This document shows positions 32,332 through 53,424 of a DNA stretch of 64,000 nt, piece by piece. The position numbers were made by a program, and so were the translations under genes. A model generated the notes under the pieces. The model was not told where the DNA came from and did not search any database. It was given only the letters and a program-made list of their open reading frames with translations. Within the stretch, counting starts at the first letter, position 1; the number at the start of each line of letters is the position of its first letter. The stretch lies in assembly GCA_004431415.1 (NCBI GenBank), contig QPMI01000417.1:1-64000 (forward strand). Direction: 5' to 3'. The DNA comes from Cyanophora paradoxa CCMP329. Taxonomy: Eukaryota; Plantae; Glaucophyta.

Positions 32332-32614
32332 GAACGGCCTTGAACCCCCCGTACCCCTCGGCCTTGGCCAACCCCGTACGCCTTGTCCAGATCCCCCCTC
32401 CATCCATCCCCCACACACACACACACACTCCATCTCGCCCCCCCCCCCCCCCCCCCCCCCACACCCTCCGGGGTTCCATGCGTCCGACCAAGCCCCGGGG
32501 GCCCCTGCTCCCATCCTCGCTCCCTCCGCTCCTATCCCTTATCCCTTTATCCCTTTTCACGTTTTCATTTCATGATTGTATATCAGATAGAACGATAATA
32601 TAAGACCGCTTCGA

Positions 32615-33258
32615 CTACATAACGGAGCAGGCTTTCGAGTTGCTGCTGCTGCTTTGTGGGGGGGATGCCCCTGGCCCCACAACTGCAGGCTGCAGCTGCC
32701 TGGGTACAGCCGGCGCCGGCGCCGGTGCGGGGGCGGCGCTCGGCCGCGGCCCGGCGACACCCGCTGCCGCGTGGGAGATCGAGGGCGAAGCGGGGCCGTG
32801 ACCCCCCACTCCAGCCAGCTCCGATCGCAGCCGGGCGATCTGCAGGATCCGGAGGCGGGCGATAATTATAAAGCGCTAAAGAAAAGCTAGGCGAGATCTA
32901 GATCCAGAGGCTTCGAATTTCGAGCGCACCTCCGCTTCGAGCCCCTCTTTCCTCCTCCGCTCCTGCGCGAACAAAGGCAAGCAAGTTAATAGCAAGCTTA
33001 AGTAAGTAATAAGGTATAAAGGCTTTACGCGTCGACATCGCGCTGGATTAGAGCGAGCCTCGGAGAGCTAAAGATTCGACGAGCGGCGCCGGCGCCGGCG
33101 CCGGCACGCAAGCAAGCAAGGTAATAAGGTGAAGGCTTTGGGGCTTAAGTACGCTGGATTAGAGCTGATAATACGTACGCCGGCACGCAAGCAAGCAAGG
33201 TAATAAGGCAAGCAAGGTAAAGTACGCTGGATTAGAGCTGATAATTCGAGGAGCGGCG

Positions 33259-33298
<40 letters not shown>

Positions 33299-36200
33299 CT
33301 CGTCGAGCTCCCGCCTGCGATCCGCGAGCAGAGTCTCGATCTCCGACCCGGGCGCATGCGCAGGCGCTGCAGCCGGAGCCTGCCCCGGGGCGCCGGAGCC
33401 GGGGCCGGGGCCGGGGCCGGGGCCTGCGCCGCCCGCCTCCGCAGACGGACTCGTACTGGCCAAATGGGGGCCCTGCGCCTGCCCAAGCACCGCATCCGGA
33501 CCGGTGAGCGCGGGCGGGGCACGGGAACGGGCACTAGTCAGCTGCAGCGACCGACGCCGCACCTGCGGTTGTAAGGGGCCCCGCTGGCGGCTCCGGAAGG
33601 GCACCGAGGCCAGCAGCGCGTCCAGGTTCTGCTCGCAATCTGTAAGCTGATCGAAAAGGCGGCGGTTCTAGCATCGGCGCTTCTAAACGGATCTCGATAT
33701 GTTATCTGGGTAGCTTATATTATATAATTGGCCGCGCCGTATAAAAAATTTGAGTCCCAGGGCTCGAGCAGCCAGGGCGCACGGAGAAGAAGGCGACGTT
33801 GCCCTCCGTGAGGAACGCGAAGGGGGCGGCGTCCGCCGACCCCGGGGGCAGCCCGGGCGCCTGCGGGGCGCGGCTCCAATGTCAAGGCCCATTCACAATA
33901 GCCCCGGCGCCTGCGGGGCGCGGGGGAGGCGAGGGCCAATCCTCTGCGTCGGCTAATTATAAAATGCAAAGCGGCTTGCCTTTGCGGGGGAGAGGAGAAC
34001 GGGGCGGACGGGCCGCCCCGCGACCTCTGCGAGCTGCAGCCGGTCCCGCAGCGCCCCGTCCCCGACCGACTCCGCGCTGCGAAATTAAAGCTTAAGCTTA
34101 AGCAGATTTCAATCTCGATATGTTGTTAAGGAAACTTGTTATAATTACTAAAGCTATGGAACGCGTTTAGCAGACGGCTGGTAGTAAACGTTGTAGGTAG
34201 GAATCTAGACGGTGGGAGGCCATGGCCATGGCCATGGCCAATCTAGACGGGTGGCAGCAATGGCACGAGGGGCGCGCCTGAGGGGGCACGAGGAGGGGCT
34301 GATAGCAGGCGATCTAATCGGTCGGAGATCCTCGGGCCTAAAAACAGCTTTGGTGGATATATAGCAGATCTAGACAGCTGCAGTAGACGATCCCATCACA
34401 GGCGTCGCAATTTCGATCGGTCGAAGTCGGAGCTCCTTGAGCTCAGGAGGGGCGCACCTGAGGAGGGGTACGAAGGCGCGGCAGGAGACGACGGCGCGCG
34501 TCGCCCCCGCCCCCGCCGCCTCCGCCGCCCCGGGCGCCGCCCCGGGCACCTGCGCATGCGCGCCCCCGGCCCCATCAGCGGCTATCGAGATCGAGCGCGG
34601 GTCGGTCCGGCCCCCGCCGCCTCCGCCGCCCCGGGCGCCGCCCCGGGCACCTGCGCGCGCGCCCCCAAGAATCGAAAACAAGATCGAAAACATGATAGCG
34701 CCTTTTAACATTCATCGGATCAAGAAGTACTATCAACGGGCACCTGCGCGCCCCCATCGACGGGCCCAGACCGGCCCGCGACCGCCAAGTGATGCATGAG
34801 AGCAGGGCTCTAGAACCTCGTCATCTCCGGATAGCAGGGTTTTTTGCGATAAATGATGCTATAGGTAGAGCTATCCGGCTTCATATCGTCGTAGCTACAG
34901 AAGAGTCGGATCTAACAGTAGGGCGGGTGGCTAGCTGTAATTAATATACATATATAACTAGTCTATAAGAGGCGGTCGCACCTGGCAGTCGGCCCAGCAG
35001 GGGATGCCTCGGTCCGCGAGGCCGAGGACGACCGCCCGCGCGAACCCCGCGTCCTGCGCGGAGCGGGCGGGCGGGCGGTCGGGCGCGAGGGAAGCTTAAG
35101 AGGAGAAGCAGAAGGGTTTCAGAGAGCCTAGAGCCATGGCGGATGGATCTAGATCTCTTTCATGCAAGCACTTCAACTTCACGGGGGCACCTGGGGCGAG
35201 CACCAGAGGACCACGTGGTCGGACGAGCCCTCGAGCGGGCACCGCGCCTGCGCGAGCGAGATTGGAGGGTAATATAAGATCTTCTAGATCTAAATCTAGG
35301 CTTGCAATTGGGCCTAGGCGTTCAACTGGCAAGGCCGGCAAGGCCGGCGCCGGCGCACCTCGGGCGTGGAGAGGAGGGCAGCCGCGTCTGCGGCCTCGGC
35401 CGCCCCGGCCGCCGCCGCGCCCCCCGCCGCGTGGATCGTCTGCGGAAACGGTAAGCTTAAGAGAAGGAGGCAGGCTCTGAGAAGGGGAGGCTGCGGCGAA
35501 AGGGGGAGGGGGGAGGGGGGGGAGGGGGGGCAGAAAGGCAAGGGGATTCCTGTGGAGATCGAAGCGTTTCGGGAAAGCTTGGGAGACGCGCACGGACCTG
35601 GGAGACGGTGTGGGCGAAGGAGGCGAAGCCCGCCTCGAAGAGCGCCTCCGTGCTGCGCGGCGGCGATCGGGAGGAACACGGCGGAGAGCGATCGCGAAGT
35701 ACTAGCGGCTTAAGGCGGGAATGCAGTGAGTTGAATTGAGCGGTTTCGCTTTAATTGAAGGGATGCAGTGAAACTTAAAGGCGGGCCGGGTCACCTGAAG
35801 TCCGCGAACTGCTGGCGGAGGAGCGCCCCCTGCGAGCGAAGCGGGCCGGGTCGACTCGGGAGGACGGAAAGGGCCGAGTAGGAGCCCCGCGCAGGGAAGG
35901 GCGGCGGCGGCCCGGGCGCGCCTTCATGTGGTCGTCGAGGGCGCACTGCTGGCGCCAGACCGGGAAGACGGGGATCTGCCGCCCGCCCAGAGCAGATCAG
36001 ATCAGATCAGAGCAAATTGAAGCTTAAGGTTCAATGGCAAACAACGAGCCGATCGGACAGGATCGTTAGAGGACTAAAGGACAAAAGGAGGATTAGAGGG
36101 GAAGATGGAGATCTATCGGCCGCCCAGGGCAGATCAGAGCAAAGAATAAAACAAACAACGAAGAGCGACGGCTTAGGCCGAGGGCCGGGGCCGGAGACCT

Positions 36201-39200
36201 GGCGGTCCTTGGTGGCGGTCTTAATAGAAATTAATCGTAAAAGTAGTTAAGCGCTTATATGCCCCAAAGGGGATTCTCTTAACGACGAGGAACGAACCTG
36301 GCGGTCCTTGGCGGCGGCCAGCTCCCCGCGGCAGACCTGCAAAGGCGCGGGCCGGGGCAAGCTTAAGCCAAGGCGCGAAACTTCGAATTTATATTGATCT
36401 AGAGCCAGAGCTTGAGGGGAGGGCGGACCTCGGAGGCGCAGGCGCCGGGCGTGACCACCAGCACGAGGGCCTCGCGGGCGCGTCAATCACGATCAGCGCG
36501 CGCCTAAGGCGAGCGTATCTACTAAGGATTTACCTGCGCGGACTGGACGGAGGGGTCGACTCCGGATCCGCCCGCCGGCGCCCCGGCGTCGGCATCCGCG
36601 GCCGCCGCGGCGGCGTCGCTCGTCTGCGAGGGCGGACTTGAATTTCGCACGAAAGTCACGGAGGCAAGGGGGCCCGCACCGGCACCCAGCACTGCGGATC
36701 GAAAGAAAGAAAGGGCACGTGTGCCATCAGATGGAAGTTCAGTTCTTCGAGGTGTGCCCGAAATTAAACAGGCGGCAAGCGCACGGTGACGTGCTGCTCC
36801 TCGCGGGCATCGGTGGCGTCGCTCGTCTGCGAGGCCGGCCGGATTGGGCTTGGTAAGAATTTCGCGCGAAATTGTTGATGTCAGGAAAACCGGGGGGGGA
36901 CCCGCCCGCACCGGCACCCAGCACTGCGGACCGAAGGGAAGAAGGGGCGCCATCAGACGGAATTGTGATTCTTCGAGGCGCGCGGGGCGGGCCCGTGGCG
37001 CACGGTGACGTGCTGCGCCTCGAGGCGGTCGCGGAGGGCCCGCGCGAAGGCGGCCGCGCCGGGGTCCCCCCGCTCGTGGCTCACGAAGGCGTCCCGGATC
37101 TGAAGGCGAATCGAAGCCTCATTAAAAATGAGATGGCGTCCTTAAACGGCAGGCAGGGCAAAAGTCGAGAACTCTTAAAGCTTAAATTTGCGCTAGATTC
37201 AGAAGAGTTCTCCCATGGAAGGGCGTGGCTTATAATTAGGGCGGCTCGGCAGGGCAAAGTTCTAGATTTCTTGAAGCTTTGCGCCAAATTTAGAAGGCGT
37301 GGCTAAGGGCGGCATGCAATGGAGCTTAAAGCTTCGCACGCACGCCGGCGGCGCGCTTGAGGTCTGCCTTGAAAAGGAGGTCCGACGAGGCGTCCAGCAC
37401 GCGCGCCTGCGCGCAGGAATTCGAAGCGGAATTCGAAGACAAGTTCAGATAAGGGCGCGCCTTGTTCCTTGGGTTCGCGGGCTCCAGCCGGAGCGCGAGG
37501 TCCGCGCCTGCCCGCATCGATTTCGTTGAGTCGTCGACAGAGGCCAAGGTGCAGCGTTCCGCGCGATGGAGGGGAGCGAGGCGGCACCGCGCTGGATGAG
37601 GAGGAGGGCGACGTCGAGCATGGGCCGCCCCAGGCGCACGCAGTGGAAGAGCGCGGTCTCCCCCGTCCCGTTCCGCTCGCTGCACGTCCGGTCGGCTCCG
37701 GTAAAGGCGGGCGGGGCGGGGCGGGGCCGGGCGCACTCGACGCTACCGCCGGCGGTGGCGGCGGCGGCGAGGCGGAGCGCTGTGCCGCGGAGGCCGGCCC
37801 GGCATGCCAGGATGAGCGCCGTGTCCCCTCCCGGGGCGGCCGCCTGCGCCGGCGCCGGCGCCGGCGCCGGCGCCGCCTCGCGCTGCATGGCCGCCAGCCG
37901 TTTGGCGGCGGACAGCACGGCCTTGGCAGCCGGGCGCTCCGCCGTCGCCGCTTCCTGCGGATGCACAAGAATCTCAACTTAGCAGTAATCACCGAGCCGA
38001 GCATCGAGTTATATATCGTGTCAAGAAATATTTTAAATTTGGGCGCCTTCTCGAGGGGCGCGACGTCCTTAAAACGGCAGGCAGGGCAAAGCTCTAGAGC
38101 TCTTGAAGCTTTTTAAGCTTTGCTCAAAATTTAGAAGGCGTGGCTAAGCTTAAGGGCGGCATGCAATTAAGCTTAAAGCTCCCTGCAAACAACTCTCAGC
38201 TTAGTAACATCTAGCTATAGTTATCGTTCTAATTATATAAGAAACATTTTAATTTGCGCGCCTTTTCGAGGGGCGCAAAGTCTTCCGGGAGGGCCGAGCC
38301 GTCGCACAGGAGGAGCCAGTCCGCCCCCGAACTGAGGGGCCGAGCATCAGCTTCTATCCGCTATTTATAGGTAGCTTCCGGATAACCGTCAATTAACATC
38401 GATTGCGCCGAATGCAGACTCACCGGACCGACTCCAGGTCGTTCGTTTTGATTCCTTGGCCGATTAAGGCGACGTACCTAATTATAATCGCTCTCGTGTG
38501 TAAGAATTCGATGTCCACCTGCTGCGACATCGCGAGGCGTCGCCGGTACCCACCCGGCGCCCTGTCCGGCGATCCGCCCCTTCGAGTCGCGCTTGAGTGG
38601 CCGCCAGACGTGCCCCGGGCGGGCCGCCTCCTCCTTGTCCCGCTCCAATAGAAACCTGATAAGCATGATTTTAGCCATCATTTAACTCAAGTGTGTGTTG
38701 AAGCAATAAAACAATACGAACTTGATGACTTCCTTCTGCTCGGTTTTCAGCGCTGCCCGCAGCGGCGATCCCTCTTTGAAGTCCTCCGGCATCGGCTGCC
38801 TCGTCTCCTCCTCCAGTATCGCCCTGTGGTATTACAAAAGAAGTTATGACGTGTATCAGATCATCATCTTATCGTCTTGAGAAGGCGAACGCACTTGAGG
38901 AGGGGAAGCCTCCCGGCCCACGCGGCTGCCATCGCGGGCGTGCCGGCCCGGTCGGCGCTGACGTGCACCTTGGCGCCCTTGGACAGCAGGTACCTGCCCT
39001 CATGATCAATGTCATCCTTATATATAATTGAGCTTCGTCTCTAATGCTTCAGCGTGCGCCAGAGGAGCGACATATATAGCTTTCGACAATACTACGATAT
39101 ATTTAGAGGCCTTCGAGTTCGAAGGTCTTTTGAATTCCCGTCTTTTTGGACACTTGGCCTGGCGATGCGATATAACGTTCGAAGATCTTTAACGTCTTTT

Positions 39201-40694
39201 CGGACACATAGGCGTTCTAAGGTCGTTGGCCTTTTTGGATACATATAAAAGGCGCACAGGCCGGGCCCCGGGTCCTCCAGAACGGCAGCCCGGTGCAGCG
39301 CCGTCTCGTCCGCGTTCGTCCTCCCGTCCACGTCGGCGCCTAATTTATAAACGGGCTAAGATCAGCGAAAGCTTATACAACCATGAGGAAGGTCATCAGA
39401 GACGAAGAGCACAGATCGGACCGGCGTCGACGAGCATGCGGAGGAGGGCCATGTCGACCTTCGGGGGGGCCGCGTCCGGGTCCGCGCCCTGCGGGATCAG
39501 CAGGAGATCCCGAGCGGTCAGCCGCGGAGATGCAGATCTAGAGCGATCAGCCGCGCAGAGAGCATGCGGGCTCAATTCGTCGATCCGAATAAATTTTATG
39601 CGAATGCCTAAAATTGCCCCTGATCAAGCGTCCCAGGTTAAGTTGCCCCTGATCAAGCGTCCTAGGGTCAAGCGTCCAAGGGGTAAGGGGGGGGGACGGG
39701 GGGGGGGGGGGAAAGGGGTAAGGGGGGTAAGGGGGGGGGGGGGGGGGGCGCCTGGGGAGCGAGGGCCTCCATGAGGGTGGTGATGTACGTGGCAGACCGG
39801 TCCCCCGCGCTCGCCCCCGCCTCCAGCAGGAGCCTGCAGGGATAAAAAGCGGAGAGATCAGATCTCGGGTGGATTAAAATATAGTGGGGGCTCCAGATCT
39901 AGATGTAGATCTAGATCTGACCGGACGAGCTCGGCGTCGCCGGTGCGGCAGGCGTGAAGGATGGGCGTGTAGCCGCCCGAGCCGCCCGCCGAGTGCACGT
40001 CCGCCCCCATCGACAGGAGGAGCCTGGCCATGGCCGCGCGAGCGAAGGGGCACAGTGAGCACGAGATCGAGGTAATCGGTAAACATCGACGCAAGAGCTC
40101 GCAAACAAGGCACACGCTTTGCTCTCTTCGTTTGGCAAGCTAAGCTAAGCGCAGTGCGTAGCGCGCACCGGACCGTCGCCTTGTCTCCGACATCGCTGGC
40201 GGTGCGCAGGGATTTGTCCAGGATCTCCTGCGAGGGCTTGAAGCCGCCCTCCTGCAGAGCCCTGCGGGCCGGCGCCGCGCGTGAGCCCCTTTATATAATT
40301 AGAGAGAAGCCCTCAGAGATAAAAGCCGTCAGAGAGAAAAGCCCTTTCTCTGACATCGGCCACTGGGTCGTACTTGATTTGGGGCTCAGATCTAGATCTA
40401 GATCTAGTTCGGATTCCGAACCCGATGCACTCGGCGGCGGCCTCGCCGCAGGTCGTCGCGGCCTCGAAGGCCGTGCCGCCCTGCTTGTCCACGACGCCGG
40501 CGTCGGCCCCCTTCGCCAGCAGCGCCCTGCGAAGGGAGCTTATAATTAGTGATCCGATCTGGGGTTTATAAATAGAGGCTTATAATAGAGGGGGTCTTAT
40601 AATAGAAGCTTAAGGGGCTTATAATAACGTTTACTGGGGTTTAGCGATCTTATAAAAGGGGTGCTTATAATAGATTGGGGGCGCCGGCAGGGCC

Positions 40695-40726
<32 letters not shown>

Positions 40727-43700
40727 GGGCCCGGAGAGGGGGGGGGGGGGGGGGGGGGGAGGGGGGGGGGGGGGGCACCGGACGAGGAGCGCGTCGCCCA
40801 CTCCACAGGCGAACATGAGCGGAGTCTTGCCCGAGCCGTCCACCGCATTCACGTCTGCCCGGAGTGAAGCTTAAGGCGCATGTTCAGACAAAACGTGTCG
40901 AGGGTCCAATGCATCGATCGGAATTAAAAAACGCATGCGCATGCGCGCGCACCCGCCCCATTCTCGATCAGCCATCTGTCGGGTCGGGGTCGGCCCCGGG
41001 CCCGGGGCGCGCGCGCGTCAGCAGAAGATGTCGCGCCGGTAGCCTAGTCCTAGATCTAGATCTGGGTCCCGGGAACGGAAGGGGAAGGGGTGCGGCGCGG
41101 GCGGGCGCACGCGGAGATCTCACGGCGGGGGCCCTTCTCGGGGCACCCCAGGGCGAAGTGCAGCGGCGTCCTCGTCCCGTAGTTCCTGCGAAATGCGGCA
41201 TAATATAAGGTAATACGGCTCGAACTCCGTTATATTGTGGTTGTATTGAGAGTTTCGTAATTTTAAGCTCATTCGACCGCGCCGGGCGCGCGCGGCGTGC
41301 CGGGCGCGCGCGGCATGCATTTGCGCACCTTCGGTCCGCCCCCTTGGGGATCGCCTGCTCGTAGAACTCCTTGTTCGTTATGTCGCTCCCCTTGCCCACG
41401 AGGTACCTGCGGGGTCGTCCGATTTAATGCAGGTTCTCGTGATCATATCTAGATCTAGATATTGACGCTCGCTCGATCTCAGCCAATCTAAGCCCGCGTC
41501 CTTTCTCTTCCTAATAAAACATCGGGCAAGCCGACTTGGGGATCATAACTAGGGGCCCGGCCGCGTTTGGCGCGCCGGGGGTGCAAGGGGGGAATCGGGA
41601 TCTAATGAAAGAGGCCCGGTCGGCGTGCTCGGCCGGCACACGCGGTTCTGCAATATAAGCTCGATATAAGCTCGATATAAGCGCAGCAAGAGAGTACGGT
41701 CTAGATCTGGCCGGCCGGGCGTGCTCGGCTGCGATCAGCTGCAGCGGCGCAGGCAGCAACGCAAGCAGTTTCTAGGCGGAAATCTAGAGGAGACGTTGAC
41801 AGGTAGAGAGAAGTGGTTCCATGCAGAACCGCGCAATGAATTCGAAGAGCAAGGCGTACGCGACGAACTGCGTGGCCGGAAGCCGAAATCTAGAGGAGAC
41901 AGCTAGGGAGAACTGGTTCCATGCAGAACCGCGCAAGGAATTCGAAGACCGGAGTTAGAGAGAAGTTAGTTTTCCCCTCGAAAACCACTTTTTCCCCTCG
42001 AATTCGACGCTCGAAAGTCGAGAGCTGACCGGTCCACCGAGCCAATCGGAAGGCGAATAACCAACATTTTCGTTGCAGACTGGCCCTCGAAAACGGCCTC
42101 ATAGAAAAATTTTGGCTGAAGCGAGGGAACGGGAAGCAAGGGGGCCCCCTTCCCCCCTTGCAATTAGATCTGTATATCTGATCTGGACCGAAGGTTCGCA
42201 CTTGACGATCTCGAAGAGCCCCTTCTGGGCGGCGTGCTCGACGGGCCGCCAGCCGCCCTCGAACCGCGCCTCCGTATCCGCCCCCCGCTCCACCAGCAGC
42301 CTGGGGTACGTATAAAGGAGCGCGGGGAAACAGCCCCGGAGGGGTACGCGCACTTCACGACCTCGAGATCGCCGGCGTCCGCGGCGTAGAACAGCGCCCG
42401 GAGGCCCCTGCGAACGCCGCAAGAGGGACGAAAGTGAGCTTGATTAGATTGAATTTGAAAGCTCAAGCTTCACGCTCGCACCTCCCCGTGTAGGGACCCA
42501 GCTCCTTACAGAACGCTGAAGTGCGGGGATCGTGAGAGGGGCGGGAAAGGGGGCGGGAAGGAAAGGGGGGATGGGGGGGTGGGGGGAGGGGAGGGGAGGG
42601 AGGTGGGTGGGTGGGGGGGGAGGGGGGGGGGGGGGCGCAGGCGCGCGGAAAAGGGCGCGGGAAGAAAGGGGGGGGGGGGGGGGGGGGGGGGACGTGGAGG
42701 AGAGGAGGGGAGAGAAAGGAGGAGAGCAAAGGGCGGATAAGAGGATCCGGAAGGGTAATTAAATTAAAGGGCGAACGAAGCTTAAGCGGCGCACCGTTCA
42801 CGTCGGCGCCGCGGTCGAGGAGGATTCGGACGCACGCCTCGCTCGGCGTCTCCCGCGCCGCTGTCCGTAAGGCATGTCGACGTCAGAATCAAGCTTTATG
42901 ATCATGATCACGGCAATTTCGAATATTGATATCGATTAATACACAACCGCACACAGCTGTAAACAGCTAGAAGCTGATACTTATATAACAGAGCCATTCA
43001 ACAGATATATACAGACAGCTGTACACAGCTAGAAACGAATATCGAGTAAAATACACGCACCCAGGTGGAGGGGGGTGAACGCGGCCGCGTCGCGCGCGTC
43101 GACCTGGGCCCTTATTAGTCTTCCCGCCCTTCGACCTTATTAGTTAGAAAACTTATTGGTTAGTTACACGCATTAGTATTAGTTAGAAACTAATGAGTTA
43201 GTATGCAAGAGGTCTAAAAGCGTCGACCTGGGCGCCGGCTTCGCAGAGGGCGGCGAGGCAGTCCGCCTTCCCCGTGCTGGCGGCCCAGTGGAGCGCCGTC
43301 TTCTGCTCCCCGTCCCGCGCCTCGAGCTCCGCGCCCCTCTCCAGAAGGAACTGCGCGCGCGCAAATTAAATCCGACGGGATCAAATCTTCGTCGAAGCCG
43401 GCGGAGATCTAGATCGCGAACGAGGGCTCGTGGAAAGGCGGGGCCGACCTTCACGACGGGCGCGTGCCCACGCCCGGCTGCGTAGATGAGCGCCGCCCGC
43501 TGCGCGTCGCAGCGCTCGTCGACCTGCGCCCCGTGCTCCAGGAGCCACCTGCGGCGGCGCAGGCGGACAGGTGCGCGTACGCGCGCGTCAGTTGCAAGTC
43601 GCGCACGTATGTACATGTATATGCGGGATGGATCGACGCGAACGCGGGCTCACCGCGCCGCGTCGAGCTGCCCGAAACGGGCCGCCTCGATGAAGGGAGT

Positions 43701-43987
43701 GCGCCCGGCCTCTCCTTTCGCCATCAAGTCGGCTCCCCCGTCGAGGAGCGCTTGCAGTGCCTCCGCGCTTCCCCCGCGGGCCGCGTGGTGGGCGGCACGG
43801 AGTCCGGCGTGGTCGCGCTCGTTCGCGTTGGAACCGGGAGCCGCCAGCAGCTTCCTGTGTGCGAGGGGAGCTCATCCGCGTGCGCGGCAGCGAGCGCAGC
43901 AGGCCGGGCGGCGCGGGCGGCGAACTGGACGCACCGGATCTCCGCGGCATCGCCTGCTGCTGCCGCTGCACACAGCTGCGATGCCAT
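32615..43987 (-). CDS. Gene G: ankyrin repeats - TIR - degenerate second TIR - coiled coil - CaaX (SKACSVM)
   Basis: ATG 43987 (MASQLCAAAAAGD). Many ANK exons (GRTPFIEAARFGQ, KTALHWAASTGK, GKTPLMFAC, ETALHRAA). TIR exons IRDAFVSHE..FARALRDRLE / CWVP / ALVLVVT / VCRGELAAA / IPVFPVW. Second TIR-like DHVVLWCSPQDAGFARAVVLGLADRGIPCWAD..CRAFVPLLS. Stop at 32615. Confidence 0.85.
36610..37022 (-). repeat. ~200-bp tandem duplication spanning two micro-exons and two introns in the TIR of gene G
   Basis: ggcgtcgctcgtctgcgagg...gcccgcaccggcacccagcactgcgga...ccatcaga...gcacggtgacgtgctgc is present twice (~36610-36800 and ~36810-37020). Confidence 0.9.
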
Positions 43988-46900
43988 GGACCCGCGAGCA
44001 CCCTCTTGCTCGCTGTTCTGGAAGGCCCGAACGGGCCGGGCCGCAGGCTGCGAACAGGCACCTTGACCGGTACCGGAATTAGCTCGGGCTCAAGAATTTG
44101 ATCGGAGGCCCGCTGACCTCGGCTGACCCAGCTGCTCGCCGCCCGGGCATCGCCCGCAAACGGATGCGTACGGCTCTGATCGCACAGTAGAGGAGTCAGC
44201 TCAGTCAGCTCCGCCCAGGAGCGGCAGCCGCAGGTCGCCTCCGCTCGACCGCGGAGAGCCGAGCGGGAGCGCGGAGATTCGCGAATCTGCATGCACGGTT
44301 GAAGGGGCGATCCCAGGTGCGATTGCTGCCGGCCCCGCTCCCGGCCCGCGGCCGGGCCGCGAGGGCGCGGGCGCCCGGCGCGCTGTAGACCCAGAAATCT
44401 AGGGAAGACGTGGATGCCGGATGCATGTGCCGCGGTTTCTGCGCCTGATCTTCTCTCACGCTGATCTCCTGCGTGCTCGCAGCATGTCGCTGCTCGAGGC
44501 CGTCCAGAAAGGGCAGGTGGAAGATGTCCGGTGCGCGCGCGGCTCACCGCCTATGCATCAGCGCCTCCTCGAGTTCGCGAATTGAGCTTCCCGCAGGCGC
44601 CTGCTCGCCGACGGTGCAGACGCGAACGCGCTCCACGAGGGCCACCTCGGGGAGAACTTCTCCGCACTCTACTCCGCCGCAGGCTCGGGCAAGCTGGAGC
44701 TCTGCAGGCGCGCGCACACACACACGCCTTTCTTTCCTTTGGGGCGCGCCGCGGCCGACGCTCTTTCGCCCAGAATCCTCCTGGACGCCGGGGCCGACCC
44801 GAAGGCGCCTGTGGTGTTCAAGCCGAAGGGGGGAGGCGCCGCCGTGAACGCTGACCTGCCCCCGGACCGAGGGATGCAACCCCTCCACGTTTCTTCCCTC
44901 AACGGCCATCTCGAAGTCGTCAGGTGCGGGCCGCGTGCGTGCGCACCTCCCTCCCTTCCCCGCCCTAGCTAACTGCAAGTTACCGTACCCCCAGGTTCCT
45001 GCTAGAGCGCGGGGTGCGATGCGCGAGCGCGCGGCCCTCTTGTGGGCGGGATCCCCTGAGCCGCCCCGGCCGCCCCCCCCCCCCTCCCCCCCCCCCTCCC
45101 CCCCCGCCCCCCCCCCCCCCCCCCCCTCCTCCTCCTGCCCCCGCTCGCAGGTGGACCCAGCCGCCCTCGCCTACGAGGACGGGTACAAGACGACTAAGGT
45201 CACCGCTCTGCATTTGGCCCTCTCCAGGGCGGACAGGGGCGGATCCCAGATCGAGGTTGCGAGGTGAGCGGGGGTACGCCGTTTTCTGCGACCCCGCGCG
45301 ACGTACCCCCCAGGCTCTTGCACGAGAAGGGCTGCCCGATGGATCTGCGGCACGCTTCGCTGCTGGGGGAGCTTCCGGTCGTCCAGTGCGCAGCTTCCGC
45401 TGGGTACACCTCGTTCCTGCGGGATCGCTGATCGCTGTACCCCCTTCCTTCCTTCCAGGCGCCTCCTGGAGTCGAACCCGGACGTAAACGAGCCCGACGA
45501 GAAGGGGTACGCTGCGCTACACCTCGCGAGCAAGTACGGCCACGCGGAGGTCGTGAGGTTGGCGTACCCCCCCGGCTCCTACCCTTCCTCCTTTCCCCTC
45601 TCTGAGCTCCGTATACGTACCCCCAGGGTTCTGCTGGCGGCCGGCGCCGACCCAAAGAAGAGCATGGATCCGGAGCTCAACCGCGGGAAAATCGGAATGA
45701 AGTACCCCCCGCTCCAAGCGGCCTGCTCGAGTGGGAGAGCGGACGTCGTCCAGCGCGCCCCGTACCCCCGGCCGTCCCGCATTCCGTACCCCTGACCGCT
45801 CTGGCGGGTACAGGCTCCTTCTGGACGCGGGCGTGGACGTCAACGTCCTGGCCTGCCCCGAGGGGGGGTACAGCGACAGGGACACGCGGACGGCCCTGCA
45901 CGTCGCCTGCGCGGCGGGGCACGAGGCCGTCGTCCGGTACCCCGTTTCCTTCCCCCTGCACCCCGGCCCGCCTTCGGGCCCCCTCATGCCTTCGCGCCAG
46001 GCTGCTCCTTGCAAACGGGGCGGACACGGCCGTCCTGTCGGGGTACCGCGTCGTGCGCACCATCGTCGCGGCGGGGCCCGAAGACACGGCGCGCTCCCCT
46101 ACCCCTACCCCCCCCCTCCCCCCCCGCCTTCTACCCTGCCCCCCCGCCCCCGCCGCCTCTTACGCTGGCTCTAGAGTGGGGAGACAGCGCTCCACGCCGC
46201 GGCGCGAGGCGGAAGCGCAGCCATCGTAAGGTGAGGCGGGCCGGCGGCCCCGGTTCAGCCGCCGGGGTACGCTTTTTCCGCTGACGCTGCGGGCGAACGT
46301 TCAACAGGCTCCTGGCTAAAGAGTTCGGAATGGACGTGAACGCTCAGGTGAACGCACGCACCGCCGGCACCCTCCGGAGCTCGCCTCTCGAATATATAGC
46401 CCTCCCCAGGCTGATCGAGCTCTTTTTTTTCGCAGGGCGAGTTCGGGTGCAGGCCGCTGCACGTGGCCGTGACCCACAGCCGCCTCGACGCGGCCCGGCC
46501 CGGTGTCCCCGGTAGGACCGCCCTCTATAGGAGCGGAACGCCCCACTTGAGCTTTCGCGTGCGCATCGCCGACCCGCGAGCCCGCGCCCTCTACGCGGAC
46601 GGATATACAGAATCCTGCCTCCATCCGAGCCAAATTTTAAAGCGCTAGCGCCCCTCCACATGGATGCGCCGCGCCATTGATATTTCTGCGCCTCGAGAAG
46701 GGGGAGCGCCACCGCTTCTAGGACGGAAGCTCGCCCTGCGCCTCCGCCACGCCCCGCTCCTAGCTGGGGACCTAGTTCCCCCGTTTCCTTTCTTCCTGCC
46801 GCGCCGCTAACCGAAAGCCTCGGGCCCTCCCTGCAGCTGGACCGGATCCGCAAGGAGCGCATCCCCGTCCTCCAGCTCCTCGTCGACGCCGGCGCGAACG

Positions 46901-49900
46901 TGAGCAGCAGGGCGCCGTGACCGCCCTCTCCAGCGGTCTCCGGATCCGGGACGAGTATAAATGAACACCCGTTTAGATATAGCTTACGACCTCGCCGAGC
47001 GTGACGCCGGGGCGGGGCGGGCTCAGGTGAACCACGGGCTCGTCGCGGGGCGGCCGACGCCGCTCTTCAGCGCGGCTCAGGCGGGCAACGTGCCCCTTGT
47101 CCGGTGCGGCACACGCACACACACGCACACACTTCTTGTTTCTTCTTTCCGATCGCGATGCTTTCGTCTTCAAATGTCCTTTTGGCGCTCCTGCGCAGAC
47201 TTCTGCTGGCTGCCAAGGCCGACCCGAACCCGCCCGCCATCAAAGGCAGCTTCGGGAGGCAGGGGGTACGCGAATCGACCTGCCGCAGCCGGGCCCTCGC
47301 GCCCGCTTGTAACTAGCGCCGTTATATTAACTTTCCACCGCCCCGTCCCAGGGTACGGTCCTCTCTGTTGGGACGCGGTCCCTTGACCCCGATCTGGTCA
47401 AGTGAGTACCCCCCCCCCCCTCTTTCTCTCGAAATGGCACCGCGCGGATTCGAACGCGGCGAAGGGCCCTCCTGGACGCCGGTGCGGACCCCAACGCGGC
47501 GGACGAGGACGGCGGTACCCCCCTCCTCGAGCTCTCCCTGCTCGGCATCAAACCGGCGGTCCGCGACGTGGCCCTGTGCGCTTTTTTCACGTACCCCCAA
47601 GCTCTGCTCCCTCCTCCGTTTATGGGGATCGAGCATCAGGCTGCTCCTGGAGCGGGGCGCCGACGCGGCGGCCAAGGCGAGGGACGGGTCTACCCCGCTG
47701 CTCATGCTGTTCCGCAGCGGGCGGGGCGCCTTCGACTCGGAGACGGCCCGCTCCCTCGCCGGGCGAGCCGCGCGCGCGCGCACCCACGCCCGGCCCCCGC
47801 TGGAATCCTGAACTATAAGCCTCCCCCGTAATTATAAGGCTGACAAGCTTTTTGTTTGTAGGGAGTTTGTGCGCCGCGGGTGCGAGGTGGACGCGGCGGG
47901 GAGCGGGGGGACCCTCCTCCATTGTGCAGCCAACTGGTGCCGCTCTTTCCGCGCTGATATAATTCTAAAATTTAATTTAAAATTGAATCTAACCGCCGTG
48001 TCACGCCCGCCATCGGCGCCAAACCACCTAATTCCGGTAGCACTTCAATAGAATCTAACACAACATAATTCCGCGTAATCTAATTCCAGTGTGTTCTTAT
48101 CTAATAGCCGCCTTGTCAAATGTCAAATATCTAATACTCTTATAGGTGCGCGGAGGCGGTGGAGCTCGCCCTGGAGCTGGGGGCGGCGGTGGACGCCCGC
48201 GGCCCCAACGACCTGGTGCACGCGCGCGCGCCCCGCCAGAGTTTTATTCACTGGGTCGGGTTTCAGATGTTAGAAATGCAAAGCTTAAGATGTGACCATA
48301 GCTGAGTCTTTCACCGGGGCTTCTCTAGATCTGTAGCTGAAAGCAGGTGCTAAAACGGGGAGCGGTCTTCTATATCAGGCGTTTAAAACTGTCAACCCTC
48401 TCTTGTTCTCCTGATCGATCGGTCGGGCGGGGCCAGAACACGCCGCTGCACGCGGCGGTGCTGATGCGGGAGGCAGAGGCCGGCGGCGCGCGCACGGTCA
48501 GGCTCCTCGTCGAGAAGGCGCGCACCTCTTCCCGTCCAGCACTTCTAGCACTTCGATTTCTATCGGACGCATCGGGCTCCAGCTCGATCTAGGGATCGGT
48601 ACCGTGCTCTGGATCTGACCTCGCGATTGGGCGGCATGGCTGCAGGGGGCGGACGTGCGGGCTCTCAACAGGGCGGGGCAGACGCCGCTCGCGGCGGCGG
48701 CGCAGAAGGGGAAGATGGACGAGGTCGCGTGCGCCCGGACCGCCGCCCGCCCGCGCCGCCTCTCATCGCGCTTCGAGTTCACGTTACGGAGCATAAGCGT
48801 GTCCTTCCTTTAAAACGATTGCAAACACATCGGCAGGCGCCTGACTAGAGCGTTTATTGCGCAAACTAATCGGCAGGCGCCCGCAGCTGCTAGAGCGGTT
48901 AGAGCTCAAATTATGTAAACAGATCGATTTCGGCAGGCGCCTGACTCGCGCGCGCGCGCGCCCCCGTTGACTTTCCGGCCGGGCAGGTACCTGCTCGGCG
49001 TCGAGGCGGACGGGGTCGCCTCTGGGGCGCTTCCGCCCCCCGGGCCGCCCCCCGCCCGCGACTCGGGGGGCGCCCTCGCCGGCGTCCCAGGAGGGTGCGC
49101 GGCGCGGCGCTTATAAATTATTTATATACTTTTGGCGAGCTTGGCGCTTGCATTGGCTGAACCTGTAAGACGGACCTAAGTTATTCTAAACCGAAGGGCT
49201 TTAGCTTCCGTTTGATCCGCTGATTCCGAATGCGCGCAGCGTCTTCGCGGCGGCTGCGTTCGCGATCAAGGCGGGGCGCGTCGACCTCGTCAGGTCCGAG
49301 CGCGTTCGCTTGAGGATCCGGAGCCAGTACTGGTCTCGGAGTTTGAGGTTTATTTTGTGGCTCGCGCTCAGTAAGGCGGCGGACTGGCTCGTCGCCTGCG
49401 TCGATTCGGGCCTTGAGGGCGATTTCGCGGCGCTGGGGCGGACGGCAGAGGCCGAGGACCAGCCGGAATGCGCGGCGGTGCGCCCTTTACATTACATTTC
49501 ACGTCGTTGAGAATTGTGGTAGCTGATGCATGCATATGCATCCGCAGCTCGCGGCGGGAGGGGCGCGCGTTGCCGCGCTACTGTCTGGAAAGAAAGGAGA
49601 GGGCGCCGCGGACGGCGCTGGCGAGTCGCCGGCGCCGGCGAACGGGGACACGGCGCTCATCGCGGCGTGCCGGGCCGGCCTCCGCGGCACAGCGCTCCGC
49701 CTCGCCGCCGCCGCCGCCGGCAGCGTCGAGTGCGTCCGGCCCCGCCCCGCCCCACCCGCCGCTGCCGGAGCCGACCCGACGTGCAGCGAGCGGAACGGGG
49801 CGGGGGAGACTGCGCTCTTCCACTGCGTGCGCCTGGGGCGGCCCATGCTCGACGTCGCCCTCCTCCTCATCCAGCGCGGTGCCGCCCCGCCCCGCTCCCC

Positions 49901-49973
49901 TCCATCGCACAGAACGCTGCACCTTGGCCTCTGTCGACGTCTCAACGAAATCGATGCGGGCAGGCGCGGACCT
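37498..49973. repeat. ~330-bp near-identical inverted repeat pair (37498-37828 and 49644-49973) between genes G and H
   Basis: Includes the shared exact stretch gcgctcttccactgcgtgcgcctggggcggcccatgctcgacgtcgccctcctcctcatccagcgcggtgccgcc plus two shared introns. Confidence 0.92.
43988..44483. promoter_or_regulatory. Putative bidirectional promoter of the Ank-TIR pair
   Basis: 496 bp between divergent ATGs. Inferred from geometry only. Confidence 0.45.
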
Positions 49974-52900
49974 GACGCTTCGAGTCGGAACGGGCGCCTC
50001 CCGCATGGTAAGTAAAGGAAATTGCATTCCAGAAATTAAATACAGCCAGTTTCGATTCGATCTTGGCTTCTTCTTAGCTTCTGACAGCCGCTTTCAAACT
50101 GATCGTAACTCCTTCGAATACTAATAATAAGCTTCGAACCCGCGGGTTTCAGCTGGCTTTTCGCGTCTAAGCCTCGTCCAAGCCAGCTCCTCCTAAGCTT
50201 CTCTTAGCTTCTGGCGGCCGATATCATAGCTTCTTCATATATATAGCTATTAGCTGCTTCGTAGCTTCTTCATAGCTTCTTCTGAGCCTCGAGTTCCGCA
50301 GAGCATTCTGGACGCGACAGCGGACGCCTCGCTCCGCGCGGAGCTCAAGGGCGCCGCCAAAGTCCGCGACGTCTTCATCAGGTGCCTATATATGCCATGT
50401 CTTTCGATGCTTAATGTCATGTCTTCGTTGATATCTTACGGCTAGCATTTATGTATATACTTCCAAGGCGTGCATACGCCGTGTCTTTTGCTGCCCCTTC
50501 AGCTTCTCCGTCGAGCTCTTCCAGCTGATGTTAACGTTTGTAAATTTTGCAGCTACGGGCACCACCCGCCCGAGGTCGCGAACTTCACGCGGCGCCTGCG
50601 CGACGAGCTCGAGCGGCGGCGCATCACGGTCCGCGCCCCCCGCCTCTCCCTCTTCAATCCATCTTTCTATCTCTGATTCCTTTCTCGACGGCATGCTCAG
50701 TGTTGGATGGACGAGATGAAGCCCAGGCGCGCGAGCGCGAGCGCCCTTAATGATTTCAATGTCAAAATCATAGTGTCTTATAAGACTTGTTCGTTATTTT
50801 CCTCCCTTCCTCTTCTGAGGCGCGGCGCGCGCGGCCGCAGCGGGATCGAGGCGGGGACGGAGTGGCGGGACGCCATTGGGGAGGGCGTCAAGGCGGCGCA
50901 GGCGGTCGTGTTCGTCGCCTCGAGGCACAGCTGCAAGCGAGCGCCGTTCGGTTCTCCTTGTTATTTCTTCTGCCGTCTTACAGAAAAGCAGGAGCGACTG
51001 GTGCATGCGGGAGCTGGCGCGGGCGCGGGACCTCGGGCGCAGGATCTACCCCGTCTGGCGCGAGAAGGTCCGTGCTCCAAACAGGAACATGCTATGATCA
51101 ATATTGCCCTTTACATTTAGATTTGCGTTTGAATTCGAATCCGTGAATTCGAACGGCAGGTGGAGCTGCAGGACCAGCTGAAGGGCTACCTCCTCCCCTT
51201 CGCATTCACCGACTTCTCCGAGTCCGCCCCATCTTCTTTGGGGTTCTTTTAAGCTCGTACGAATCGAGCCTGGCCGGGTCGCGGTTCCAGGGACGCCCTA
51301 TTCGAGCGGGACTTGCCCGCGTTCGTCGAATCGCTCCAGCAGGTCGGGGCGCCTGCGCTCGCACAAAATAAAAAATGTCTCTCAGCCTGTCAATTGCAAG
51401 CGTTTCAGCCTGACGGCTGAGTGATCATGAAGCTCAAACATGTTCCGGCAGACGATCGACGCGTCCTCGTCTGGGTCGGGCGGAGAGAAGAGTGCAGAAG
51501 CCGCGTCGGCTGCCGCGCTCTTGGCCATGCCCGAGGCCTGCACATCTCTTCAGCGCGCGCGCCACTTTCTGTCGGTCCGTTTCTCACTGAAAGTCCCCCG
51601 CAGGCGCGCTGCAAAGTGGGGGATGCGAGTGACCACCTCGTCCTCTGGTGCTCTCCCAAGGTGCTAACACCTATGCTTTGATCTGATCTGATCGCTAACA
51701 AGCTGAGCCTGTCCTTTCCTCACGGTTCTTTCCTCTGCTCAGGACGCGGCCTTTGCGCGGGTCGTGGTGCTCGGCCTCAGGGACCGAGGCGTCTCCTGCT
51801 GGGTCGACTGCTTGGCGCCGGTGGCGGTGCGGTCGCGAACTCGAACGCAGCGATTTTCTGCAGAACGCTAAGTGCAATTCGCTTTGCGTTACTAATTTCG
51901 AACTCTCGCTTAGGTTGACGGCGCGCATGCGCGGGGAGCGCCGCCGGGGTCGGATTCGGATGCGGAGGTGGAGACGGCCGCGGCGGCCGCCGCCGCCGTT
52001 GCCAGCTGCGCTGCCTTCGTCCCGCTCCTCAGGTGAGCAGCTGCAGTTCGCCCTCTGCGCCGCTTGCCTTCGGCCCTCACGCCAGCGCTGTAGCCCCGCG
52101 TCGATCGCGGAGCACGCGGACGAACTCCGGTCCCGCCTGCAGGCGCGCGCGCGGTCCTCGGTCTGCAATTTACATTATTGTCCGTGTCACCAACGGCTCC
52201 GGGCCGGGCCGGCCACGCAGCTGGCGTCCCAGCACCGGCGGCCTCTGCGGCCCGCCGCCCTCCAGGATTTCGCGGTGCGCCTCTTTTTGCGGGCGCGGAT
52301 CTAGATTGCACCCTGCTAGCTACAACGCTCCCATCCATTCATTGTTTTCACTTCTCGGACGGGCGTGCGGGCGCAGGTGCCAGCGTCGCTCGAGTACTCG
52401 CTCGCCCAGTCCCCGGGCTTCTGCTTCCTCACCGAGGAGACGTCCACCTTCTTCCCGGTCCGCCCGCCCGCCCGCCCGCCCCCCCGCCCGCCCGCCCGCC
52501 CGCCCGTTCGCCCGCCGTGGCGCGCCGGATCTAGAGCTCTCCCGTTTCACAGAAGGCTAGCGCGTATTGATCAATTATACATCGCGTTTGCTCGTTCGTT
52601 TTCTGAGACCTGATCATGACCTCGGAACCGTACCGCGCCGCAGAGCCTGGACCTCCTCGTCGCGTCGCTGCCGCGGCCCGCCGACGTCGCCCCCGCGGCC
52701 GCCGCCCCCGCCCAGGCCCTCGGCCAGCACGGCGCCGGTGCGCTTAGACTAGAGTCGTTGATCATGATCATGAGCGGCTTGCGCTCAAAGCCGCGCGGCT
52801 TGCGCCAGCACCCGTGGTTCTAGATCTGCGGCTGGCCGCTCAGATCACTGAGTCGCTGACCCGCCGAGGCAGCCGCAGCCGTGGCGCGGGTCGCGTCTGG

Positions 52901-53424
52901 GGCGTCCAAGGATCGGCAGGCGCGTTTATGTTTTGAGCTTTGAATCTCAATGTGTGAATCGCCGCGGCTGCTGATGCTTCGCCCTCCGCTGCGGCCGCAG
53001 ATGGCGGCGGAGCTCGCGGCATGCGAGGAGCAGCTGCGGGCGGCCCGCAGGGAAACGGCCGAGCTCGAGGCGGAGGTGAGGCCCGCTTGGCTGAACTTGA
53101 CACTCTTCGACGTTCCTGGATCTGCGCATACCTTGGCTTGGCTCAGCTTATAATTAATATTAGCTCTCCACAACTTCTCTGATTTCCTCGTGTTACTCCA
53201 TCGCAGGCGGCGAGGCTGCGGGCCGCCGCCGCGTCGCTCCGGAGCCCCGCGGAGCCGGCCGGGCCCCCGCCCCCCGCCCCCGCCCCCGCCCCGCCCCGCC
53301 CTCGACGGCGCAGCCGGCTCTGCCGCTGCCGCGGGCGCCGGCGCCGGCGCGATCGGCAAGCCGAGACGCGGGCGGGGGCCCGCGGCCGGCCCCGGCGGGG
53401 TCCAAGGCTTGTCTTGTCCAGTGA
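44484..53424 (+). CDS. Gene H: ankyrin repeats - TIR (catalytic Glu) - degenerate second TIR - coiled coil - CaaX (SKACLVQ)
   Basis: ATG 44484 (MSLLEAVQKGQVEDVR). ANK exons (GMQPLHVSSLNGHLEVV, GYAALHLASKYGHAEVV, RTALHVACAAGHEAVV). TIR VRDVFI|SYGH...CWMDE...GIEAGTEWRDAIGEGVKAAQAVVFVAS...SDWCMRELARA...IYPVW (50360-51070). Stop TGA 53424; needs an indel in the G/C runs of the last exon. Confidence 0.88.

Follow-up and report, generated by a model that had tools for sequence, protein, structure and literature searches.

Genes G and H lie head to head in the window analysed here, a stretch of 64,000 nt of DNA from Cyanophora paradoxa (EukProt EP00741). The organism is a unicellular alga, in agreement with the unicellular eukaryote supposed by an initial annotation made from the sequence. 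G runs on the minus strand from a proposed ATG to the stop codon at 32617-32615 (43987-32615), and H, counted with its tail string, runs on the plus strand (44484-53424). The two genes have a common layout: ankyrin repeats, a TIR domain (TIR1), a second domain of TIR fold (TIR2) and a coiled coil. As the annotation had proposed, TIR1 is asymmetric. It is complete in H and degenerate in G, and the degeneration goes beyond a single residue change.

The start codon of H (ATG at 44484, plus strand) was placed by mapping the public model P0002 onto the window. The proposed start codon of G (ATG at 43987, minus strand) was taken from the list of open reading frames (ORFs) and opens an ankyrin-like first exon. 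The divergent pair with starts 496 bp apart was borne out by the ORF list and the mapped H model. The intergenic stretch of 496 bp separating both start codons (43988-44483, strandless) is a candidate shared promoter; bacterial-type signals were sought in it and none were found, as expected. A short shared upstream region and a head-to-head gene order are a feature of paired plant immune receptors, and they are present here.

Gene models and expression of the pair

The public model of H (tig00020564_g11412.t1, P0002; 1222 aa) mapped to 44484-53075 on the plus strand in 46 exons. Its 45 introns ranged in length from 50 to 792 nt; in 10 of them the donor was GC rather than GT. The ankyrin array of H comprises about 800 residues (44484-50104, plus strand; Pfam Ank_2 1.1e-77 in eight stretches).

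A full-length ankyrin-TIR-TIR-CaaX gene G is absent from the public annotation. The public gene set holds G as fragments: g11410 (P0001) has 123 aa and reads through a donor site, and g11411, by its number, probably sits between g11410 and H.

Reads were mapped on 32601-38600, with 33247-33436 and 37701-37737 left out as repeats. Three probable RNA runs from two studies (X1, X2 and X5, which are not named RNA in the run records and behave as cDNA in the mapping) and one DNA run (X9) were used. The DNA run was collinear across every bin of the stretch. X1, X2 and X5 covered exon-sized pieces alone, and intron-only bins were at zero depth. The jumps in the RNA contigs had CT..AC or CT..GC ends on the plus strand, which corresponds to GT-AG or GC-AG introns on the minus strand. 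Several GC donors in G were backed by RNA contigs (e.g. introns 37407-37460 and 37955-38261). G is transcribed and spliced from the minus strand. An untranscribed G would have spoken against the initial annotation, by its own terms; spliced RNA contigs of the gene were found in three runs. The high summed depth in bins 34401-34800, 35401-35600 and 37601-38000 came from GC-rich sequence common to other transcripts and not from G alone.

The C-terminal model of G was built from RNA joints, a spliced protein-to-genome alignment of family proteins and direct frame reading. From 38350 to the stop codon it has 23 exons; counting the duplicated pair treated further on, there are 25. Every modelled intron has GT/GC-AG ends, and the frame is open across 654 codons with no frameshift or stop. 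Two length checks agreed with the model: the 225 nt separating the RNA pieces 36533 and 35439 equal the sum of five modelled exons, and the 357 nt separating the RNA pieces 33980 and 32839 equal 78+66+180+33, a multiple of 3.

Pfam was run on single exons of G only. Ankyrin matches of the upstream exons exceeded the Pfam cut-offs. They comprise the exon at 43659-43850 (minus strand; two repeats, Ank_4 35.2 bits, Ank_2 33.8 bits) and the exon pieces 43446-43544 and 43216-43365 (together 43216-43544, minus strand; Ank 34 bits, Ank_4 23.6 bits). The last ankyrin exons (37954-37737 and 37679-37588, spanning 37588-37954, minus strand) were defined by RNA pieces and joints and gave weak Ank matches. 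They lie partly within a tract that is 93% identical to H. Single TIR exons of G had no Pfam match. NB-ARC was found neither in the searched single exons of G, where Pfam gave Ank alone, nor in the Pfam scan of H, which gave Ank and TIR alone. The NB-ARC independence that had been claimed for the pair agrees with the scan of H.

The C-terminal homology of G and H was collinear in tblastx, and the peptides quoted for it in the initial annotation were located at 35220-35191 (minus strand) and 51631-51660 (plus strand). Its description as 'exon-by-exon' held in part: many intron positions are common, but at least five differ. Upstream of 38336 in G and 49367 in H, tblastx gave only generic, non-collinear ankyrin similarity. 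Hence, the N-terminal ankyrin arrays do differ as had been stated.

One tract stands out from this homology. The G arm (37489-37828, minus strand; ~340 bp, exons and two introns) and the H arm (49644-49982, plus strand; inverted repeats I1-I3) are 93% identical. The identity of the other conserved exons is just 71-74%. Because the 93% identity includes introns, the tract is a probable case of recent gene conversion between inverted paralogs, and its similarity indicates a continuing exchange between G and H.

The G+C content of the window is ~65%, and short exons are abundant. GC-AG introns are common at 44484-53075 and 32615-38350. Introns of both genes contain long G-rich or C-rich tracts of low complexity (39680-39757, 40687-40784, 42565-42691 and 45052-45144). 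These tracts translate as poly-Pro, which led to many spurious ORFs and repeat matches.

Degeneration of TIR1 in G and the retained scaffold

TIR1 of H (50302-51342, plus strand) is the canonical TIR domain that had been annotated. Pfam TIR_2 (PF13676) matched residues 839-953 at 2.7e-23, with 83.2 bits against a cut-off of 28. The WCMREL motif occupies 50999-51016, its Glu being encoded at 51011-51013, and the DVFI/SY motif is interrupted by an intron. H keeps both the BB loop and the Trp four residues ahead of the Glu. Its best solved sequence relatives were AbTIR (4.1e-5), a bacterial nicotinamide adenine dinucleotide hydrolase (NADase), PdTIR and the TIRs of the plant proteins RPV1 and RUN1. 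In the AbTIR alignment, the WCMREL motif placed its Trp and Glu onto those of the W-x-x-x-E motif of AbTIR (stretch K-D-W-T-N-Y-E-L).

The last 397 residues of H were modelled with AlphaFold on an 11-row family alignment, reaching a mean predicted local distance difference test score (pLDDT) of 78.7. The model consists of two consecutive alpha/beta domains followed by a 45-residue terminal helix. Fold matches of this model were the TIRs of RUN1, RPS4, SARM1, AbTir and Hydra TRR-2. The coiled-coil exons (52869-53075, plus strand) form a single long helix in the AF2 model (model residues 352-396).

TIR1 of G (35598-37099, minus strand) was delimited by RNA joints and pieces and by alignment to the family TIR1. 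Its exons are 37099-37004, 36923-36912, 36826-36785, 36691-36680, 36623-36534, 36470-36429, 36336-36298, 35975-35922, 35829-35795 and 35652-35598. A homology-guided aligner had suggested an exon at 36744-36660 with an 8-nt micro-exon. This was rejected because it is the polypyrimidine tract and acceptor inside a tandem duplication, and because the RNA contigs use 36623-36534.

Over 123 columns, TIR1 of G had 33-46% identity to the family TIR1. The initial annotation had described a G that keeps the Glu, lacks the Trp and has a rebuilt BB-loop region, and all of this was found. VCRGEL lies at 36336-36319, with Val in place of the Trp. Through the alignment of H to the W-x-x-x-E motif of AbTIR, the Glu codon at 36322-36324 (minus strand) is aligned with the catalytic Glu of TIR NADases. 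The core strands are kept. An unrelated Ala/Asp/Gly-rich exon (36623-36534) has taken the place of the motif that follows strand one, of the acidic terminus of strand two, of the entire BB loop and of the next helix. At the position of the BB loop and helix alphaB, this exon is unrecognisable and shows no family motif.

Of the 32 TIR1 columns that are invariant in 11 public family members, 14 were kept by G and 18 were lost. In a leave-one-out test, every public member kept 74-100% of the invariant TIR1 columns. TIR2 of G kept 15 of the 17 columns that are invariant across the family; the Tyr-Ser in a P-x-x-L-x-Y-S motif was its sole loss. Since 14/32 columns were kept in TIR1 and 15/17 in TIR2, the loss is focused on the catalytic domain. 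This pattern in the aligned sequences argues for a divergence of G that is centred on TIR1 rather than a uniform decay, and for a loss of enzyme activity with retention of the scaffold.

Moreover, TIR1 of G contains a tandem DNA duplication (36680-37015, minus strand) with a period of about 203-232 bp, whose direct repeats are 77-91% identical. It copies a 12-nt micro-exon and the adjoining ends of the flanking exons, each with good splice sites. All RNA contigs end exactly 17 nt past the junctions flanking the duplication, as would be expected of a 31-mer assembly graph if the transcript contained a 37-nt repeat. All three RNA runs had depth in bin 36801-37000, which is otherwise intronic. 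We infer that both duplicated copies are present in the G mRNA, which would add 18 residues to TIR1.

The second domain of H (51604-52457, plus strand) is a cryptic TIR fold with no conserved Glu. Modelled alone by AF2, it reached a pLDDT of 78.0. The VIA structural matches of this model were SARM1 (Z 13.6 over 126 residues at 2.5 A), MyD88 (13.3), Hydra TRR-2 (13.1) and the RPS4/RRS1 TIR heterodimer (4c6t; 12.9), and Foldseek found SARM1 at 2.5e-5. Sequence searches saw less of it. Pfam TIR_2 gave 23.3 bits for TIR2 of H alone, under the cut-off, and PDB sequences searched with a TIR2 profile yielded no significant match. At E up to 1, TIR_2 matched nine of nine scanned family TIR2 rows, a count that is slightly generous as two of the rows contain part of TIR1. 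At the position of the TIR1 Trp-x-x-x-Glu, placed by secondary-structure and sequence spacing rather than by residue-level superposition, the family TIR2 has no conserved acidic residue; an invariant Arg is nearby. Because the modelled fold is that of a TIR and the Glu site has no conserved acidic residue, the label 'pseudoTIR' given to the second domain is fair.

TIR2 of G (33783-35247, minus strand; exons 35247-35191, 35053-34982, 34549-34458, 34076-33980 and 33860-33783) was supported by RNA contig adjacency. Its best match was H (51%). The G tail (32615-33628, minus strand) follows with linker and coiled-coil-like exons (33628-33563, 33478-33299 and 32962-32930) and the last exon (32839-32615), which ends Cys-Ser-Val-Met-stop. 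RNA contigs link this last exon, with its SKAC-SVM-stop, to the upstream TIR2 exons at in-frame lengths. The Cys-Ser-Val-Met end is in frame in the mRNA because the 357 nt between the RNA pieces fit the modelled exons and are a multiple of three. A Cys-x-x-Met end like that of G was found in 5 of 11 public paralogs (P0010-P0014). In a sixth paralog (P0009), a motif of this kind stops one residue short of the modelled end.

Family context

Word-indexed searches with the TIR1-TIR2-tail part of H found 11 more proteins, all from Cyanophora, and no relatives outside this genus. An exhaustive protein search with one ankyrin-rich exon of G returned only H, a G fragment and generic ankyrin proteins. 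ESM Atlas searches gave single-TIR look-alikes only, with template modelling (TM) scores under 0.5 and feature scores under 0.9. By these searches, the family appears to consist of 12 public models plus G and was found here in Cyanophora only. Canonical TIR1 motifs are present in all 11 further proteins. Degenerate partners like G thus appear to be absent from the public proteome.

G was aligned with H and ten further public paralogs. The maximum-likelihood tree placed G, H, P0009, P0012 and P0018 in one clade (support 100/100). The longest end branch in the tree was that of G (0.69 vs 0.38 for H).

P0013 and P0017, on other contigs, have insertions in TIR1 that resemble retained introns. P0013, P0016 and P0010 are near-identical in their C-terminal half and may be recent duplicates or duplicated contigs.

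A literature search found no paper on these Cyanophora proteins. Uncharacterised ankyrin repeat-TIR proteins of oomycetes have a one-line mention in a review (PMC9153377), and tandem cryptic TIRs of the Dictyostelium protein TirE are described in a preprint of 2026 (PMC13142454).

Interpretation and comparison with known systems

G and H are real, divergently transcribed paralogs. We favour, at about even chances, the reading that H is a lipid-anchored TIR NADase and G a degenerate modulator that retains the scaffold, each family protein carrying an ankyrin array, TIR1, a cryptic second TIR, a coiled coil and a CaaX end. G would have originated by a local inverted duplication. The ankyrin array of H may bind a ligand or restrain the enzyme, like the ARM domain of SARM1, and TIR2 and the coiled coil may gather TIR1 domains into a composite active site. 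In G, the scaffold (TIR2, coiled coil, CaaX end and TIR1 core strands) would be kept under selection. Because the BB loop, the Trp and most of the other invariant TIR1 positions are lost, G alone is probably inactive or weakly active. It would most likely co-assemble with H-type proteins, and either restrain them or add a different ankyrin sensor. The gene structures, the expression and splicing of G, the domain folds and the pattern of lost residues are results of the analysis; NADase activity, prenylation, hetero-assembly and a role in defence are what we infer for the pair.

Several points weigh against this reading. A local inverted duplication after which one copy diverges yields the same head-to-head picture. 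TIR1 is intact in both g18416 and g18418, a further two family members that share a contig, so adjacency does not always join a live and a dead copy. G may itself be active, as the Glu is retained. The additional TIR1 exons and the lost Tyr-Ser of TIR2 could be early decay, and open frames are a weak sign of selection at 65% G+C. The N-terminal half of G is partly modelled and lies outside the RNA-mapped stretch, with its start at 43987 coming from the ORF list.

The C-terminal end of H belongs to the same points. The initial annotation had SKAC-x-x-x-stop at the end of both proteins. This stands for G, where CSVM is joined in frame by RNA, but in H the best acceptor sets a frame other than that of the CLVQ end. 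The H tail (53207-53424, plus strand) contains the Cys-Leu-Val-Gln-stop string at 53401-53424. SKAC-LVQ-stop reads in frame 0, but the acceptor through which the G homology carries on (exon start 53207) sets frame 1. A CLVQ end requires either one more intron, 3n+2 nt long, or the correction of an indel in a run of C. Many GC-donor candidates for such an intron were seen and none was convincing. The public H model stops upstream of the CLVQ end.

Among the other explanations, the one that survives best, though we think it rather unlikely, is that G is a decaying H-type duplicate. It would be transcribed and not yet frameshifted, with no functional tie to H, and the pairing would be a by-product of the inverted duplication. 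The longest branch in the tree, the 18 of 32 invariant TIR1 positions that are gone, the tandem exon duplication within TIR1, the loss of Tyr-Ser from TIR2 and the fragmentary public annotation all fit such a decay. Open frames are also cheap in GC-rich DNA, and many long wrong-frame ORFs are in the list. Yet 23-25 exons and 654 codons lead to a conserved CaaX end with no frameshift or stop, all modelled introns have GT/GC-AG ends, spliced mRNA was found in three runs, and the loss is focused (TIR2 15/17 kept vs TIR1 14/32).

We consider it unlikely that G and H are a true sensor/executor immune pair as RPS4/RRS1 are, in which one ankyrin array detects a pathogen cue and releases or activates the partner NADase at the membrane. 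The head-to-head order with its 496-bp shared upstream region would suit such a pair, as would distinct ankyrin arrays on common C-terminal scaffolds and a catalytic asymmetry centred on TIR1. Moreover, G and H come from an expanded family specific to their lineage, which is frequent among immune receptors. Against it, no integrated decoy-like domain was seen and the NB-ARC switch is absent. The sensor/executor reading of G and H remains an analogy.

It is very improbable that both enzymes are active with different chemistry, G using its kept Glu on another substrate or making another product: active-site variation around the Trp is reported to alter which cyclic ADP-ribose isomers bacterial TIRs make, and nucleic acids are substrates of some TIRs, but G has lost, beyond the Trp, the entire BB-loop/alphaB segment and 18/32 invariant positions, and a duplicated beta-strand segment probably lies within its TIR1.

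Beyond the modulator reading favoured here, the pair could, as a tentative and doubtful extension, be a two-gene, NB-ARC-free immune module of Cyanophora that is duplicated as a unit and combines a membrane-tethered, ankyrin-gated TIR NADase with a degenerate sensing or restraining paralog. If true, this module would be convergent with paired nucleotide-binding leucine-rich repeat receptors (NLRs) of plants, in a lineage at the base of Archaeplastida.

Across bacteria, plants and animals, TIR domains serve as the shared enzymatic currency of immunity. To our knowledge, their wiring in eukaryotes beyond plants and animals is largely unknown. An architecture of ankyrin repeats, one live and one cryptic TIR, a coiled coil and a lipid anchor, in head-to-head pairs of which a single partner retains the active-site motifs, would be a compact NLR-free model for TIR gating. 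It would also be a model for the evolution of pseudo-enzyme partners. As degenerate partners seem to be absent from the public gene set of Cyanophora, domain surveys that rely on this proteome would undercount such pairs.

Compared with known TIR NADases (AbTIR/AbTir, PdTIR, RPV1/RUN1 and SARM1), TIR1 of H shares the Pfam TIR_2 assignment, the aligned Trp and catalytic Glu, and the fold, at only about 20-25% identity. Unlike them, it is fused to an ankyrin array, a cryptic TIR, a coiled coil and a candidate CaaX end.

The likeness to plant paired NLRs (RPS4/RRS1 and RGA4/RGA5) consists of head-to-head paralogs, a short shared upstream region and one degenerate signalling domain. G and H differ from them in having neither NB-ARC nor LRR, and Pfam showed no integrated decoy domain in H and the single exons of G. 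The candidate sensor here is the ankyrin repeats, unlike in the plant pairs. For RPS4/RRS1 in particular, the likeness is confined to the asymmetry and the head-to-head order.

SARM1 (ARM-SAM-TIR) is alike in combining alpha-solenoid repeats, an oligomerisation module and a TIR NADase, and it is the best structural match of TIR2. Past the TIR fold, no sequence kinship with SARM1 was seen. G and H have ankyrin repeats where SARM1 has ARM, a C-terminal coiled coil where SARM1 has central SAM domains, two TIRs and a candidate lipid-anchor motif.

The closest likenesses in microbial eukaryotes were drawn by description only. The mention of oomycete ankyrin-TIR proteins (PMC9153377) describes no tandem TIR, CaaX or gene pairing; the ankyrin-TIR fusion itself is the same as here. 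Dictyostelium TirE (PMC13142454) differs in its RCC1 repeats and its lineage, with no pairing or CaaX reported. As in G and H, a repeat array is followed in TirE by two diverged tandem TIRs that Pfam models miss.

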